DNA of 63,955 nucleotides, the filler included, from Intoshia linei (taxonomy: Eukaryota; Animalia; Orthonectida), in the NCBI GenBank assembly GCA_001642005.1. It is 12 parts of 12 records of this genome, joined end to end, with 100 filler letters (N's around TTAATTAATTAA, not from the genome) between each part and the next. Parts side by side here need not be neighbours in the genome. Positions count along the whole stretch, not along the records: positions 1 to 11,919 come from LWCA01001128.1; 11 more parts are not named here. One strand, given 5' to 3'. Below the pieces are notes generated by a model. The model was given only the letters and a program-made list of their open reading frames with translations. It searched no databases and was not told the origin of the DNA. A program made the translations under genes and the position numbers. Positions 2,530-11,919 of this stretch are shown here, in pieces. Within the stretch, counting starts at the first letter, position 1. Each line of letters starts with the position of its first letter.

Positions 2530-3155
2530 AAAATTGAAATAAATATAGACCAACTATTTACTTTAGGTATTTGTTTTATAAAATTTATAAAAATTCAGAA
2601 ACAAATAAAATTTAAAAACATGTGTGCTTGTTATAAACTGAGAAATCGATACATTGGTTATCTATTATAGAATTATAAATAATTTACGTGTTTCTTTAAA
2701 ATTTAATTTAATTACACATTATCAATTTTTGAATTTTAATTCGTTTGTAATTTATAGATTTCTGGAACATTCCATATTTTGGACAATGTTAAACATACAT
2801 TTTAATTTTGATATTGTGGGTGTCTTCAATTCATTTATTTTAATGGTACCATTTTTAGGTTTATTGTTTTGCTTTCTATACGTTAATATCGTTGATTACC
2901 AATTTGTAGAAAATTTCACTGGAAATATTTTACATTTATAAACAAATTTATCTTGTAAAATTAAAATTTACGACTTTATTGTTAACAATTCAATTGAATC
3001 AATAATCAATATATTTATATAATCTCACAACACCAGGATTAATAATTATTGTTATTGTTCATTTTATTTTAACCAGTGTACAACAAATGTTTTTACATGA
3101 ATCTACAATGTATGTATTTCAAATGGTAAGCAATATTTATCAAAATTAATTTAAA

Positions 3156-3214
3156 ATTTATTCATCAACATACATTATTGTAAAATTTATAATGTATAAA
3201 TCACGTTAATAAAT
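3156..3214 (-). promoter_or_regulatory. SECIS element (GUGA-core variant) of the minus-strand GPx paralogue
   Basis: Minus strand: ATTTATT-aac-GTGAT-TTATACATTAT-AAATTTTACA-ATAATGTATGT-TGAT-g-AATAAAT. This gives helix I, a GA/GA quartet, a ~10-bp helix II and an AAA apical loop, starting just after the TAA stop (3216-3218). Confidence 0.75.
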
Positions 3215-3215
3215 A

Positions 3216-5517
3216 TTAAATTGTAATTTTATCAATTTCGTTTTGTAGTTTCTCAAATATAAAATAAATATTAAATTCGATATTTCTCAAATTATTAAAA
3301 GTATTTAACCCTAAAGATGTCTTATATTTGACACAAAACACTGTGTCGTAATATCAATAATTTTTTGACATAAGTCGTAAAAACTATTAATTGGTATAGT
3401 TCATTGATATGAATGTTACATGTTATTTTTCAAATCACTTATTCGTAGAACATTTAATGTCAGTATTATGAAATTATTTAATAACAGCCTAGAATTTTAA
3501 AAATTATTAGTTTTGTCTCGGACAAAGTATTAAGATAAATTTGACAACTTGCAAGAAACTTACATCTTCCCGTTCAAAAACGCATTTTATCATCAATTTT
3601 TTTCAAAAAAATTACAAAATTATACACTTGACCGATTGGGGAAATAAAAATATTTTAGAAAATAATAAATTATTTTACTAGCAAATCATATTTTAAAGAA
3701 AATTTTTGAATTGGAATTCCTTGTCTATTTACTAAAAATTTAGTAAAATTCCATTTGATTCCACTTAATTAAAAATATAAACAAATACAATATAGAAATT
3801 TCAATGATCCTAACTTATATGCTACGCGATTTTTGTTTGTGTGTGTGTCCAGCTTTATTTAAAACTACCCGTCTTAGAATTTTATAAAGTCCACATTTCA
3901 ATTAGTCTTATCCGGGGGTGTTAGCAAACATAATTTCAACCTCCCAAACTCACATCTTATGAGTCAGAAACCCCAATTGTCACTCTTTTTGAAAATCAAA
4001 CGAGTTGGAGAATTCAAAAAAATATATACGCCGATGTGGATTTTAAAATCATAAACATTATCATAAATTTAAATTTAAAAAAATTATATCTTCAAAGCCA
4101 AAACCACAAATTACCATTCTTTTTTTAATGAAAACAGTCCTAGAATTTCAAAAAATTTCAATCCGAATAAGTGACGACTTCAGGGTCAAAAAAGCATTTT
4201 AGTATTCATATATTTTTTTCCGAAATATTTTATTAAAATAAAAAATGTAAAATAATAAATGATCCGAAAATTAAAAAAAATATTATTCTGATAAAGCTTA
4301 TTCTAGTTGATATAAATACAAAAGTTCCACCCGAAATATCTACGCATGCCCAATGTCAAATATATTTTAATATATTATTAACCAATATTTTTCAATTATT
4401 TCGATTAAAATAAAAATTGAAAACGTAAATATTGATCCTACAATTTCAAAAAAAATGTGCAGTGAACGTCTACTAATTTCCAATAAAGAAATATTAATGA
4501 AAATCTATATAAATCATCCCTTCAAAATTTTTTTCATTACTACGCAATTTTAAATTTCAAATTCTCAATTTCAAAACATTTTGAATAAAATTTAAATTGA
4601 TTATTAAAATTAGTTAATAGCTAATTACTTGATACTTATTTACTCATTTATTTATGAACATGTGAGTTGATAATTTTATTATATTTTTAATGTTCCATTC
4701 ATGAACATGAATGTATTACTTATATAAAGTTCCAGGTAATTGATTTTGAAGATACATCCATAATGGAGAAGCATTATACCCATTAACATCAATTTTAGAA
4801 AACATGTCAAAAGATACTTTATATTGTTGTGTAACAAATTTTTAAATTTCCATGTTTGAAGACGGTTCCTATAAAATAATATATTATCATTTATATTTTA
4901 ACTTGAATATTTTAAACCTGTGAGCCAAATTGATTACATGGAAAAGCCAAAATTGAAAAATTTTTAGTTTTATTGACAAGATATAAAAATTGTAAAAAAT
5001 TATAATTGCTTTTTGTTAAAGATCATTCAGATGCTACATTAACTAATAATAATACTTTTGATCTAAAATATAGAAAATAAAATAGACTCTAGTGCGGCAT
5101 TTTAAACAATTTTTTACAAGGGTTAGCCCTTAAACTAATTCATGAATTTCTACATAAGATTTATACAGTGATATTTAAAATGACAAACGCAACTCGAATA
5201 GATAGCGTTAAATGTTTTTCATTGCGAATTAGTTTTTCTATTTTAAAAATGCACACTTGTAGTGCTAATTGCCCTTGATTCTTTGATGGGTGTGCGACCT
5301 TAATGTACACCGTACAATGTACACTTATACAAAAGCATGACATTTTTATGTGGCATATACATGTATATGCATTTTGGTGTCTAAGGATTAATATTACTAA
5401 ATAACATATATTTTTCAATGGAAACATTTTTATCATGTCTTTTACATTGAATTTGTAGACATTTTTTCTGATGGTAAAAAAATTTTTAGTATTTAACCGC
5501 ATCAATTTAGGTAACAT
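3216..5517 (-). pseudogene. GPX4: Disabled selenoprotein glutathione peroxidase (GPx4/PHGPx-like) paralogue
   Basis: Exons 5517-5406, 5062-4918, 4868-4720, 3763-3679, 3251-3216. Encodes NVYKFNVKD../DKNVSIEKY|ISKVLLLVNVASE-U(TGA 5025-5023)-[17 protein letters not shown]|EPSSNMEI*KF..W..|[15 protein letters not shown]..|KLQNEIDKITI*. Lesions: frameshift in exon 1, in-frame TAA at 4844-4842, and a GAG acceptor before the last exon. The 149-nt and 85-nt exons equal those of the intact copy. Confidence 0.85.
3808..4385 (+). mobile_element. Non-autonomous Helitron-like repeat (5' end and body) in a GPx pseudogene intron
   Basis: Starts A^TCCTAACTTATATGCTACGCGATTTTTGTTTGTGTGTGT, like an invertebrate Helitron 5' end. 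The body recurs at 35097-35530(-), 48165-48310(+), 54640-55000(-) and 59215-59450(-). Confidence 0.6.
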
Positions 5518-5689: not shown

Positions 5690-6850
5690 ATAGGACGAGA
5701 GCTCCACTATATGAATTTTTAAAAGAAAAATGGTAGAGTGATCGACTGCAGCCTATTTACCTTAATACTGATGACATGAACAATGTCGCACTTATAGATG
5801 ATTCAACTACCGTAAAAATCTCCAAACCCCAAATGGGGAAGTAAATCATAAAATATTTTGGGATGGAAAAAACGGTATTTATAAAATAAAAAAAGAAGTA
5901 TCAACAATGGCTACTTCGTCATTTTATGCAATGTTCTCTCAGCCAATGGGGTTGGTAGTGAGCATAACTATAAAATGTAAAAAAAATTATAAGTCATATT
6001 TAACTACTTACAAAAAGAAAATGATGCAAATCTGATCAGTAGTGAATTAAACTGGAGCATACTACTTGAGTCAGGATATTTAGGATCTTCTTCTGATACT
6101 CCTGAGATATTAAAAATAGCAATGCCACGACCTTCGCAGTGTGTTACCATTACTGAAAAAACCAACCTAAAAAATATGGCTATAAAACGTGTACCAGTAG
6201 AGCAATTCTTTGGAAAACTTAAAAAATCCTTCAAGGTATTGTTTTTTTATTTTTAAAACTGACTTAATTAAGCTTTTTTCCATAGGGTGACAATTTAAAT
6301 TTTTCAAAGATAGCCACTATTTTTTGTAAACTTTGTTCTGGATCTTATATATTTTCGAATAGAAAATTTTTTATTTTTTGTTGGATTGTTAGACGTTTTT
6401 ATCAAACAAAAATTTAGATCAAAATTCTTTCATTTTTCTTAGCCCTGAAAAATTTTATGGACTATATTATTTAGTTTTATAGTGTAAAAATTATAATTTG
6501 TCCACGAGTGCGTATAAATAGAAGTAACTAGATTATTCTATGTTTATTCTTAACTTTAGATATTATCTGGTGTTTATACATACGAGTCATAATCAATCGA
6601 CAGAATTTATTTTGACATTGACTTCGATATATATGTACTATTAACGAATGAATTAATATCAAGAAACGTCTAAAATGAAATGGATCATACGTATGAAATC
6701 AGACTCATGTCTATCAGAAAAGATTGAGAACGAGAAAAAACGTTGAAGTGTAAACAATCTGCTGATCGATACCGGGAAAGATCTTCTATGAGAAATGAAT
6801 TGGATAATTCATTATCCAGTCAATATAATGACATTATGTATTACATTTTA
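5690..6850 (+). mobile_element. Decayed PIF/Harbinger-like DDE transposase with a spliceosomal intron
   Basis: Fragments DSTTVKISKP, WDGKNGIYKIKKEV, WSILLESGYLG, KRVPVEQFFGKLKKSFK | intron 6236-6559 (GT..AG) | ILSGVYTY..FDIDFDI..LLTNELI. Many stops. A close second copy lies at 51570-52360. Confidence 0.7.
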
Positions 6851-7525: not shown

Positions 7526-10500
7526 ATGACTGCAAATATTTATGATTTTACAGTTGACGATATTGGCGGAAATGCTGTCTGTCTTGATAAATACAGAGGC
7601 AACGTGGTTTTAGTGGTTAATGTAGCCTCTGAATGAGGGTTAACAAAAAGCAATTATCAATTTTTACAGTCTTTATACGAAACAAATAAAGATAAAAATT
7701 TTTCTATTATCGCTTTTCCGTGCAACCAGTTTGGTGGACAGGTTTTTATTTTTTTTTTTTTAATATTTTATATAATCAAGCTTTATATTAGGAACCATTG
7801 TCAAATCCAGAAATTCTTAAGTTTGCTACGGATAAATTTCAAGTTACTTTTGATTTATTTTCCAAAATTGATGTAAACGGAAAGAATGCTTCTCCTTTAT
7901 GGAAATACCTGCAAATCAAGTTGACTGGATTTATTACCAAGTACTATATATTTTATTGTAATATAGTGGTCATCAATCGCAGATCCCTGCGGTTATACTT
8001 AATGTGCGTTACCTTTCACGCATTTATGTATATTTTTAGTTCGATTAAATGGAATTTCACTAAATTCTTAATAGATCGAAATGGTGTTCCTTTGAAACGA
8101 TACGGACCTAAGGATAATTTGAAAGTTTGTTATTGATATTTTTATAACTTAATTCTTCCACTGTCTGTAATGTATTTTTTAATTACCTATTTGAAAATGT
8201 ATGAAAATAAAAGAATAAACGTTTTCAAAATTATGCTGTATATAGTATAGAATACATAGACGGTGAAAGGGTTAAATAATATTTTACAATGTGTGATAGT
8301 TTAAAAGAGGTTGAGAATTACTGATCTATACTCTAAAACAGGGGTTCCCATACTCATTTTATCTACCACCCCTTTTTAGCAATATATTTTGTCACAACTA
8401 TATTAAAGTGCAATTTCGCTAAGTGCAAGTGAAATTTTTCATAAAACTTTCACTTTGGCGATGAATAAATTGTGATTATATTACACTAAGCAACATTTTA
8501 ACACTTAAAAAAATTTCTCTTAGCTTTTATTTTTAAATGATAAACCGAGTTGCAAAATGTATATTCTGAAAGAAAAGGATAAATCTGTCTGCTAGTTACC
8601 GAAATAATATCACATTAATATTGATTTATAAAGAGGATAATTGGATTTCTTATATCATTAAGCGAACTATTTTGGGTATACTAGACATGTAAATAACTAT
8701 TATATTCCAATGCATACATTTGATAAATAACCTTATCAACACAATGCGATAAAGCGAATAACCTTACAAACACAATACATAAAGCGGGCTACTTTATGAA
8801 CTAGTTACAATATTTCAAATTATGCCGAATTAACGACGCAATAAAGAAAACATTATTGCTTTTCTAAGTTTCTAAAATTTATTAGAAAGTAATGTATTTA
8901 TATACAACATTGCATATATGACAATATATAAAATAGTAACATTACATACATACATACAATTGAACTAAGAGAGAATTAAATCCATATATGCCTTGATCGA
9001 TTTTAATTTAAATAAAAAAATTAAAACTTAAATTTTGTAAATATTTTACCATCATGATGAAAAGGCGACGAAGAACAAGATGAAATGCTAAGATCGCTGC
9101 TAATTCGATATTTTTTTCTCCTTTTATATCTCCTTATATATGCTAATTTATATAATCGACATTAAAATGCGATATATCATATCGATAGGTATGAGAAAAT
9201 ATACTAAATGATTTTTTTAAGCGTCCAAAAAATCTTTCCACGCAGCTTTATATTTTCTTAAACCTAAAGTGTCTGAATTCGGTCCCATATATTCAGAGTC
9301 GAGAATCGTACTCCATCTCGTATCACTTTCTTCGTCTGTTTCCTCAATTGGAAGCTTTTTCAGGTAGCTAAGATAACTTGAGTTAACTTAACCTTAGTAA
9401 TGAGTGTTTAATATCTTTAGATGTATAAAGATGTGTACCCATAAAGAAGCTTGTTATTTTTTTACTGGTTAAACTTTTAACTCCCATTGCATCTGAGTAT
9501 CTTTTGTCGAGATCCATCATGTAATCAATATTCCTCTCATCATTTTTATGTGACAAGAAATAAACGGGATCCAATTCCTTATGAGGACACAGGAGTTGGT
9601 ATTTATTTATGGCTATTAATGTGTGTGCGCTTTTAACACTTGACATAAGAATCAGCTTCTTTTTTGTCAACTCTCATGTTACGTAAAATTGTATGTTGAT
9701 GCCTGGCTTCTCTACCAATATGTCACAATGTCTCGTCATAGAAGGCTCAAATATAACTCTGTGAAGCACATATCTAGCTAAGGCCAAGCTTGCAGTTTGA
9801 TGATATATCATGGAGGGAAAATTCGAGGAAGTTTTAGGAGCAATGCTAGAAGTAACCCAATGTAGACAAGATACCTGTAATACAACTGGATCACACAAAA
9901 GTTTATATGAATAGAATGGAGTTCTAGACAAACCTACTTTTCGGCATACATTTAAAGGATGTGCTAATCTGGCGTACTTCGAAATAAAAACACTATAAAA
10001 CCCGCGATCATGCTTCCATCTAGTGCAAGCTAGTACACTTCACCTCTAATAGCATTGACTACAGGAAAATTGTGTGATATCATCCTGGTATTTAGTACAC
10101 TTAGACATGTTTCCTTGAATTCCTCTTTTTCCAGTGGTATTTTGCCTTCAAGTCTTCCAACTCCTTTTAATTTATTTGCCAAACCGGCTCTGTTCAGCCT
10201 TATTCTTTCACCTGACTTCCCAATGTTATTTCCATAAAAAATTAAGAACGTCAATATTTTATTTATTATAAAATGTCATAATTTTAGTTTTTTCTTTGCA
10301 TTTTCATTGAAATACATGATATCTTGCTATCAAATTGATAATTTTTTTAAGCTTTGGACAGTGCGAAGTTAAGTGTTATTATTATTAGATGACCTGGAAT
10401 GGTTGAAAAAACTGGCCTATTTTTGTAGAGTTAAATTAAGGTGCTAATTGTCTTTTATTTGTTATAATGGTACCACTAAATGTTTATTTTCCCAAACATT

Positions 10501-10612
10501 GGGAATCACTGCCATAACGTGATATAAAGTTTGTGGTATTCTACGAAATACCCACTTATTAATTTTTATTTAGAATTTGCAATTTGATGTTGAAAAACTA
10601 TTAAAAGACTAA
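7526..10612 (+). CDS. GPX4: Selenoprotein glutathione peroxidase (GPx4/PHGPx-like, monomeric type), 162 aa, Sec at codon 37
   Basis: Exons 7526-7741, 7792-7940, 8040-8124, 10574-10612, all [41 protein letters not shown](TGA 7634-7636)-[18 protein letters not shown]|[21 protein letters not shown]..|[23 protein letters not shown]..|[12 protein letters not shown]. The U/Q/W/N catalytic tetrad is intact and a SECIS follows. Confidence 0.93.
9249..10254 (-). pseudogene. Decayed intronless ~330-codon ORF of unknown, possibly viral, origin, antisense in GPx intron 3
   Basis: ORF pieces 10254-10030, 10039-9677 and 9673-9386 (the last two in one frame, split by a single TGA at 9676-9674), plus a tail ..[38 protein letters not shown], join with two frameshifts. 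Visibly more GC-rich than the flanks; no motif recognised. Confidence 0.5.
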
Positions 10613-10630
10613 TTGATATTGCTATATATA

Positions 10631-10697
10631 TTTTTGTTTATTTACATGATAAATATATCATAAAAATATTGATATGTATTGAAATAATAAATAAAAA
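10631..10697 (+). promoter_or_regulatory. SECIS element in the GPx 3'UTR, overlapping AATAAA
   Basis: TTTTTGTTTATT (helix I)-tac-ATGAT (core; ATGA 10646-10649)-AAATATATCA-TAAAAATAT (AA loop, 12 nt after ATGA)-TGATATGTAT-TGAA-at-AATAAATAAAAA (helix I). Confidence 0.85.
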
Positions 10698-11067
10698 TGT
10701 ATAATTCAAATACTGTATTATCTAATGTATTTTTTCTGTAATTTATCAACCACATGTGACATACAGTGAGATAAATAATTTTCTTTTTATATATCCATAA
10801 CTTTTGCATTAATTATGATATTTCAAAATAATATATTCGATACGAAAATACTACGTCTGTATTCTAATAAGTATAGTTTCCCCTTTTTTATTAATTTAAA
10901 TTTGATATTCTAAATATTTTTTGATAAATATTATATTTACTCATTTTAAAAAGATTAATTTTGCATATTAAAACTTTAATTCGTTTTATATTTTAATTTA
11001 AATTGGTACATCCCATAAGGTCAAACGTTCAACTGATTTTAAACGAAGAATGATAATTAGTTACTAT

Positions 11068-11364
11068 CAGGGATTGGAAATAATTGCAATTAATTGAAAA
11101 ATATTTTCATTTATCAATTAATTAATTTTTTTCATATAATTTAAAAAATTTAAATGACGAACAAAAGCATACTAGTATATTCATTATAACCACATGACCA
11201 GTTTTTTAAAAATGATTATGATATTGTTATCAATCTTCAATTACAATTGTAATTTAAATTTTTTTATATTTCAAAAAACCAATTTATTGCAATTATTTTT
11301 CATAAAGCAATTGGAAAATATTTTTTTATTTTCGTTAATTGTTATCAATTAATTCCAATCCCTG
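11068..11364. mobile_element. hAT-type MITE
   Basis: TIRs CAGGGATTGGAA..AATTG / CAATTAATTCCAATCCCTG; 8-bp TSD GTTACTAT/GTTACCAT. The same end recurs at 33883 and 36462. Confidence 0.8.
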
Positions 11365-11669
11365 GTTACCATTAGGTGATTTATTTAATATGGGAAATTG
11401 TTACAGTATTGTTTCTCAAAACTGTATTGACATAAGGTTTTTTTAAATATACGATAACATTTAATTTTATATCTAACTAGCTTGGCTGGTTTTATTTATT
11501 TTATAAATACATTGTGGTAATGTTAAAATTTAAGTAAAGTTTATACAAAATGTTTTGACAGTTAAAACTTAAAAATTGCGTAGCAATGAAAATAATTCCG
11601 AAGGAATCAATTATATAGATTTTCACCCATATATCTTTATTGGAAAAGAGAAGTGCAATCCATATTTTT

Positions 11670-11919
11670 TTTGAAATTGGTCCAAATTGGAATTCTGTGA
11701 TATTCTCGGATGAAAAAAAATTCAATTTGGACGGTCCTGATGGATTCTAGTTTTATTGGCATCATCTACGAAAGGAAAATGAAGTCTACTCTACGCGGCA
11801 AAGTGGAGGTGGATTGGTAATGGTCTGGGGAGCATTTTTACAGAAAGGCAAATCCAAATTGGCGATCTGAATGGAAATCAGAACTCTGAAGATTATATTT
11901 TTACCTTATCTGAATTTCT
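11670..11919 (+). mobile_element. Tc1/Tc3-like transposase fragment
   Basis: [43 protein letters not shown]; truncated by a gap. Confidence 0.9.

Follow-up and report, generated by a model that had tools for sequence, protein, structure and literature searches.

Intoshia linei is an orthonectid, a strongly simplified lophotrochozoan parasite, and the locus described here raises the question of whether its genome still recodes UGA as selenocysteine (Sec). The window in which the locus was found is a stretch of 63,955 nucleotides made of 12 joined parts of the genome; the part concerned is identical to LWCA01001128.1 of the assembly GCA_001642005.1, and the best match for its reading frame at 7792-8133 is A3Q56_06454 of I. 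linei itself, with no transcript-derived Intoshia protein among the matches to that frame. A literature search that covered papers and supplements, with the genome paper outside it, returned no joint mention of selenoproteins and Intoshia or orthonectids and nothing on the Sec machinery of Intoshia, which is absent also from the Secmarker supplements; no tRNA genes were found in LWCA01001128.1, the one contig searched for them. The features of the locus itself suggest that I. linei keeps Sec recoding of UGA, and the arguments for this reading are set out below.

A GPx4-type gene with an in-frame TGA

The locus contains a four-exon gene of the GPx4/PHGPx type (gene 1), which extends on the plus strand from 7526 to 10612, that is, from the start ATG at 7526-7528 to the stop codon TAA at 10610-10612, and comprises 162 codons in exons that total 489 nt. 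We examined the spliced model exon by exon. Exon 1 (7526-7741) has 72 codons, includes the Sec codon and ends with the codon of the tetrad residue Gln72 (7739); a stop codon stands immediately 5' of the ATG, so gene 1 has no in-frame N-terminal extension. Intron 1 (7742-7791, 50 nt, phase 0, between Q and E) is followed by exon 2 (7792-7940, 149 nt), which encodes a short loop of the GPx4 type and, since it contains no Cys at all, lacks a resolving Cys after EP. Exon 3 (8040-8124, 85 nt), which lies between intron 2 (7941-8039, 99 nt, phase 2) and intron 3 (8125-10573, 2449 nt, phase 0), supplies the tetrad residues Trp126 (8050) and Asn127 (8053) together with the RYGP motif. The coding part of exon 4 (10574-10612, 39 nt) adds 12 residues of the C-terminal helix and the TAA. 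All these features are on the plus strand, and all three introns are of the GT-AG type and stand at ancestral positions.

The in-frame TGA (7634-7636) is codon 37, between NVASE and GLT. The sequence-only reading had placed it at the peroxidatic position with homology on both sides, and this is what the alignments show: the match to the Pfam GSHPx family runs unbroken across the TGA (model positions 1-31 upstream of it, 34-67 downstream, and 68-108 in exon 2), and the three PF00255 pieces score 31.0, 36.5 and 43.2 bits, each above the curated cut-off of 27. Among 81 homologues aligned by tblastn, the residue opposite the TGA is Cys in 62; another 11 show Trp, and eight are gapped there. All five of the Trp homologues that were fetched have TGA in their own DNA, which indicates that these are selenoproteins to which the wrong code was applied in translation. 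The Gln, Trp and Asn partners of the tetrad are intact, as that reading also held. In gene 1 Trp is encoded twice, both times by TGG, and Cys by TGT or TGC.

With regard to the family, a PDB ranking of the annotated protein OAF65836.1 puts Schistosoma-type GPx (2v1m, 2wgr) and GPx4 at the top (E-values from 1e-35 to 1e-39), followed by GPx7 (3e-21) and GPx1 (3e-15). The alignment to residues 62-152 of 2wgr is ungapped and spans the site of the insert found in tetrameric GPx, and gene 1 accordingly has no oligomerisation-loop insert. By this similarity ranking, which is not a tree, gene 1 appears nearer to GPx4/PHGPx than to GPx1/2/3/5/6 or to GPx7/8.

The public gene model leaves out the catalytic loop

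The sequence-only reading had expected that automated annotation would truncate the gene at the TGA. The error turned out to be of another kind: the GenBank model (A3Q56_06454, OAF65836.1, UniProt A0A177AV24; 135 residues) skips the UGA by means of a false intron of 54 nt (7616-7669, plus strand) that is really coding, which removes 18 codons around the UGA, and it omits exon 4 and runs on into intron 3. The protein in the databases is thus deprived of its catalytic loop as well as its C-terminal helix. That 7616-7669 is coding is indicated by comparison with a second GPx gene on the opposite strand (gene 2, described below), in which the segment is 87% identical and has no AG acceptor at this place, while the true intron 1 is unconserved. 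Cestode gene models contain the same mistake over a TGA. Skipping of the UGA is a recognised class of annotation error (PMC12822975), and GenBank selenoprotein genes are mostly mis-annotated, with only 5% of the vertebrate ones correct (PMC12822975).

A distant last exon at a conserved position

The claim that a last exon of 39 nt lies behind an intron of 2.4 kb was examined with a tail profile built from 95 homologue C-termini, with Intoshia left out, which was scanned over 23,754 positions on both strands. The scan supports the claim: exon 4 at 10574 ranks first of the 23,754 positions with 8.7 bits, compared to 3.0 bits for the next site preceded by AG, and a pyrimidine-rich AG stands directly 5' of it. 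Its counterparts are the last exon of gene 2 and those of the orthologues. In particular, the genes of the annelid Ridgeia and the cestode Hydatigera share introns 1-3 with gene 1 in both position and phase, and both have a phase 0 intron five residues past the RY[GS]P motif, then a separate short last exon with a SECIS-like hairpin behind it, and TGA at the same site. The Hymenolepis orthologue also has the TGA and a SECIS, and TGA is present at all eight orthologue loci examined. Of the four intron positions ancestral to Sec-dependent animal PHGPx genes, gene 1 retains three and gene 2 all four.

A bacterial origin of the gene is rejected on account of the introns at ancestral animal positions, and host contamination is unlikely, as the record is assigned to I. 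linei, and its short introns agree with the median intron length of 57 nt in this species (PMC6543705). Opposite intron 3, on the minus strand, lies a disrupted reading frame (approximately 9220-10275), for which no match was found in Pfam, PHROGs, NCBIfam, the PDB, phage genomes, IMG/VR or a word search.

A predicted form 1 SECIS behind the stop codon

Behind exon 4 we predict a form 1 SECIS (10625-10703, plus strand) from a structural descriptor, from the fold and from its pairing as compared to gene 2. The ATGA core (10646-10649) is followed by 12 nt, the apical AA (10662-10663) and the 3' core TGAA (10680-10683); helix II has 10 bp with one mismatch and one G-U pair, and helix I has 18 bp. 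This agrees with the UGAN/KGAW consensus for the core (PMC3753652). The core of ATGA, 12 nt and AA is thus as the sequence-only reading described it, but the distance given there was too long: the predicted hairpin begins about 12 nt past the stop codon rather than about 19 nt, with the core 33 nt past it. For Sec insertion, the UGA and the SECIS have to be separated by a minimum of about 50-110 nt. In the spliced mRNA of gene 1 the distance from the UGA to the SECIS core is 411 nt, well over this minimum. The fold of the region (-19.1 kcal/mol, z-score -4.3) was equalled by none of 200 shuffled sequences; it should be kept in mind that helices form easily in this UTR, as its GC content is 12%.

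The descriptors were devised for this analysis. Over 23.8 kb the strict version matches twice, once downstream of the gene 1 stop codon and once downstream of that of gene 2. Since it missed the orthologue controls, it was relaxed and the null expectation was recomputed. The relaxed version finds six of the eight orthologue SECIS elements and gives three matches where 1.1 are expected by chance in about 24 kb; on shuffled sequences of the 130-nt region behind gene 1 it matches in 34 of 3000 cases and on those of the gene 2 region in 26 of 3000. Rfam reports no SECIS match either on the whole of LWCA01001128.1 or on 10600-10740, a miss of limited weight because none of the eight orthologue controls reaches the cut-off of 35 either (scores of 23-28 bits, with two missed altogether). 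A custom covariance model built from the eight orthologue elements found neither Intoshia SECIS; it rests on a rough alignment, partly out of register and with longer apical regions, and recovers only its training set. After the apical AA there are 6-8 nt in the Intoshia elements, as opposed to 14-16 nt in the orthologue elements found by the descriptor, and it is on this short apical stretch that the assignment to form 1 is based. AATAAA signals are found at 10686 and 10690, within the 3' strand of helix I, and the presence of the signal in helix I of both gene copies points to a message with its 3' end shortly beyond the SECIS. This placement could also be due to chance in AU-rich DNA. An ATTAAA is located at 10600; transcripts terminated by it, or by AATAAA signals inside the intron, would lack the SECIS.

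An inverted paralogue that retains the TGA and the SECIS

Inverted repeats led to a further GPx gene (gene 2, 5517-3216, minus strand), arranged head to head with gene 1 at a distance of about 2 kb and missing from the GenBank gene calls. Its exon 1 (5406-5517) encodes a basic N-terminal extension and then the GPx N-terminus with a frameshift, a gap of 4 nt relative to gene 1 near 5434, across which two frames each weakly match a part of the N-terminal profile (E-values of 0.24 and 0.27). The first 18 residues include five K/R and no D/E, and the extension resembles a mitochondrial presequence, if one may judge from composition. An ancestral intron at KYR|G (5405-5063), which gene 1 does not have, separates exon 1 from exon 2 (4918-5062), in which the TGA is found at 5025-5023. 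Exons 3 (4720-4868, 149 nt) and 4 (3679-3763, 85 nt) are equal in length to exons 2 and 3 of gene 1; the former contains a premature TAA (4844-4842), and the latter retains WNF, with RYGP changed to KFSL. The last exon (3216-3251; 11 residues and TAA) is outside the top matches of the tail profile and was assigned by its position and its likeness to exon 4 of gene 1. All of these features, as well as the predicted form 1 SECIS (3148-3222), are on the minus strand. The SECIS has the core GTGA (3204-3201), the 3' core TGAT (3167-3164) and AATAAA at 3162; its fold has a z-score of -2.4, and the core lies 11 nt past the stop codon.

Gene 2 thus keeps the TGA, the tetrad, the splice sites and the SECIS, with the Gly that follows Sec replaced by Ser, and the presence of a TGA and a SECIS with compensatory changes in a second copy strengthens the finding for gene 1. 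Between the two elements, 86% of helix II is paired; two compensatory changes alter both sides of a pair, and a further change alters one side only. Both double changes appear in the unshifted alignment (slide 0), and sliding it by one to three columns in either direction yields none. With two sequences only, the covariation is not significant relative to column shuffles (119 of 500), and we regard it as support, not as proof. Summed exon by exon, the two genes differ by dS of 1.18 with dN/dS of 0.25, so the TGA and the hairpin, kept in both copies, have outlasted a long divergence under selection. In family-profile score gene 1 exceeds gene 2 in all three exons compared.

The reading frame of gene 2 is not open even with the Sec UGA set aside, as it is broken by the frameshift in exon 1 and by the TAA at 4844-4842. 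These two separate lesions make it likely that gene 2 is a recent pseudogene: it is probably an old inverted duplicate, which was once a selenoprotein gene under purifying selection and has since decayed.

Weighing the alternatives

Taken as a whole, with gene 2 as a probable pseudogene, the data are best explained if gene 1 is a functional GPx4/PHGPx selenoprotein gene of I. linei, and we consider this very probable. Should the Sec machinery have been lost recently in Intoshia, UGA 37 would be a plain stop codon and gene 1 a relic that has not yet decayed. Gene 2, which decays and yet keeps its TGA and SECIS, illustrates that such features may persist for some time after function is gone, and the accessible part of PMC5330540 lists losses of Sec from certain insects and mites and from plant-parasitic nematodes; nonetheless, the same part of that source reports none from Lophotrochozoa, gene 1 has no lesion in its 162 codons, with the tetrad and the splice sites intact, and it outscores gene 2 against the family profile, all of which makes a relic improbable. 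Alternatively, the GenBank model could be right, with 7616-7669 a real intron and the product a GPx-like fragment of 135 residues that ends at 8136 and has no catalytic residue. The segment does begin with GT and end with AG, its size is near the median of 57 nt (PMC6543705), and AATAAA occurs at 8206 and 8214. However, it encodes the conserved active-site loop, its conservation in gene 2 without an acceptor is opposite to the behaviour of intron 1, and the same error over TGA in cestode models belongs to the known class of mistakes (PMC12822975); we therefore regard this model as very improbable. Equally little can be said for an altered nuclear code or a general read-through, by which UGA would mean Cys or Trp and the hairpin would be a chance fold of AU-rich DNA. 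The hairpin is indeed missed by covariance models, and chance alone should give about one descriptor match in every 24 kb, but gene 1 spells Trp and Cys with their standard codons, and the hairpin occurs right behind the stop codon in both paralogues (a chance of approximately 1% each), with compensatory changes. Finally, the true codon could be TGC or TGT, misread as TGA in what is a single draft assembly, and gene 1 would then be a Cys-GPx; given the TGA in gene 2 and at all eight orthologue loci, as well as the presence of a SECIS, this is hardly credible.

A separate question is whether gene 2 itself may be a working, possibly mitochondrion-targeted selenoprotein gene, its lesions being assembly errors or confined to one allele. 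Both lesions are at homopolymer edges, dN/dS is low (0.25), the splice sites, the tetrad and the SECIS are intact and the N-terminal extension is basic. On the other hand, there are two lesions rather than one, the gap in exon 1 is of 4 nt and not of 1 nt, the Gly after Sec and the RYGP motif are both replaced, and the SECIS core is just 11 nt past the stop codon. On balance we find a working gene 2 unlikely.

A proposed mechanism

If gene 1 is a functional selenoprotein gene, its four exons, including the one beyond the long intron 3, would be spliced to a message of 162 codons. SBP2 or SBP2L would then bind the kink-turn core of the SECIS in the 3'UTR (the SECIS-binding protein of annelids is SBP2L; PMC2746813), and eEFSec would bring the Sec-tRNA, so that UGA 37 is decoded as selenocysteine and translation stops at the TAA at 10610-10612. 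This scheme presumes that the Sec machinery is present in I. linei. In SECIS-binding proteins, a SID motif has been linked to the binding of form 1 elements (PMC2746813). The product would probably be a small monomeric cytosolic peroxidase of about 18-19 kDa; Gln72, Trp126 and Asn127 would hold Sec37 in place for the reduction of hydroperoxides, probably those of lipids. Judging from what is known of the family, the catalytic cycle would pass via a selenenic acid that is reduced by glutathione; recycling by glutathione is proposed because there is no resolving Cys.

It is tempting to go one step further and consider the two genes jointly, although we regard the combined scenario as doubtful. 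According to it, orthonectids shrank the SECIS to a minimal and nearly GC-free form 1 element that begins right after the stop codon, with the poly(A) signal accommodated in helix I, by which the hairpin could help to set the 3' end of the mRNA. Gene 2 may be, or until recently have been, a mitochondrion-targeted partner of gene 1, and the duplication may then replace the alternative starts of vertebrate GPX4. If this were true, minimal SECIS elements would evade the standard covariance models, and the selenoproteome of orthonectids would remain hidden.

Comparison with known systems

The analysis provides evidence from sequence for the retention of the costly selenocysteine system in an animal genome that is among the most reduced. 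It also corrects the record OAF65836.1/A0A177AV24 and adds an unannotated paralogue, and the two paralogues allow covariation to be checked, in a natural pair, for an AU-rich SECIS missed by Rfam. Compared to the eukaryotic form 1 SECIS (RF00031), the Intoshia elements share the RUGAN/KGAW core, the 11-12 nt to the apical AA, the helix II of 10-11 bp, the presence of helix I and the location in the 3'UTR; they differ in that they are not scored by Rfam, contain about 12% GC and carry AATAAA in helix I of both copies.

In vertebrates a single GPX4 gene gives rise to a cytosolic, a mitochondrial and a nuclear form; it has a form 2 SECIS and carries Lys two residues after Sec, where gene 1 has Leu. 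The likeness lies in the Sec/Gln/Trp/Asn tetrad, the short loop of the monomeric type, the absence of a resolving Cys and the RYGP motif. Introns are conserved between the Sec-dependent genes of flatworms and vertebrates (PMC2679728). The GPx4-like gene of the annelid Ridgeia piscesae has its TGA at the corresponding site, shares three introns with gene 1, or four when compared to gene 2, and, like the Intoshia genes, has a separate last exon that is followed by a SECIS-like hairpin; it is also mis-annotated, being split into two genes. It differs from them in its mostly longer introns, the longer apical region of its SECIS and a C-terminus of the KYW type.

Among the platyhelminths, in which Sec-GPx is kept by parasitic species (PMC3828610, PMC2679728), the Sec-PHGPx of Schistosoma (2v1m, 2wgr) is the best PDB match of OAF65836.1, and the GPx4-like gene of Hydatigera resembles gene 1 in the catalytic-site TGA, the intron positions and a SECIS soon after the stop codon. 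A GTGA core, as in gene 2, has been reported for GPx1 of S. japonicum (PMC2679728). In contrast to the platyhelminth genes, gene 1 has no KYR|G intron, and the Intoshia SECIS elements have a shorter apical loop and are far more AU-rich. A Sec-dependent GPx4 with a SECIS is the usual ancestral state in animals, here kept in a reduced parasite, and leaves the general understanding of Sec biology unchanged.

Possible insertions and alternative message ends in and around gene 1

The third intron of gene 1, the GPx4-type selenocysteine gene, harbors a broken reading frame of ~1 kb on the minus strand (about 9220-10275), a stretch of higher GC content (about 35%) that GenBank splits into two hypothetical genes, one of them A3Q56_06456. 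Searches of Pfam, PHROGs, NCBIfam, the PDB, phage genomes and IMG/VR, together with a word search, revealed no homologues of this frame. It may be what is left of a mobile element or virus that inserted here and has since decayed, which would account for the great length of the intron. The same intron contains seven AATAAA hexamers, and an ATTAAA is found on the plus strand in exon 4 (10600-10605), upstream of the SECIS; if the latter signal were used for polyadenylation, the resulting gene 1 message would be devoid of the SECIS.

Candidate remnants of mobile elements lie elsewhere in this contig. At about 11570-11919 (plus strand) we recognized by eye a Tc1/mariner-like transposase remnant, marked by the motifs FSDEKKFNLDG and VMVWG; Pfam searches with pieces of it returned no match. 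An inverted copy of the sequence adjoining this remnant (4441-4612; 172 nt, 77% identity) lies inside an intron of gene 2, the inverted GPx paralogue. Between the two GPx genes there is a PIF/Harbinger-like remnant (about 5800-6500, plus strand), detected as a weak match to DDE_Tnp_4 (E 0.016). A pair of imperfect 37-nt inverted repeats spaced by 223 nt (11068-11364) resembles a small non-autonomous transposon. Downstream of gene 2, GenBank annotates a minus-strand gene of 94 residues with a calponin-homology domain (1632-2520).

The segment 114-481 (plus strand), which carries no GenBank annotation, retains part of the coding sequence for a viral RNA-dependent RNA polymerase, including the GDD motif; Pfam RdRP_2 matches it in two pieces in different frames (E 3.6e-7 and 7e-9), and a PDB search gave no match. 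It is likely an endogenous viral element derived from a positive-strand RNA virus.

Comparison with annelid and cestode orthologues

As in Intoshia, the GPx genes of the annelid Ridgeia (L002, 5949-9983) and the cestodes Hydatigera (L003, 6001-7904) and Hymenolepis (L011, 4001-4901) are wrongly annotated near the UGA. In Hydatigera, the Q|E intron has a GC donor, and the model lacks the last exon, just as the Intoshia model does.
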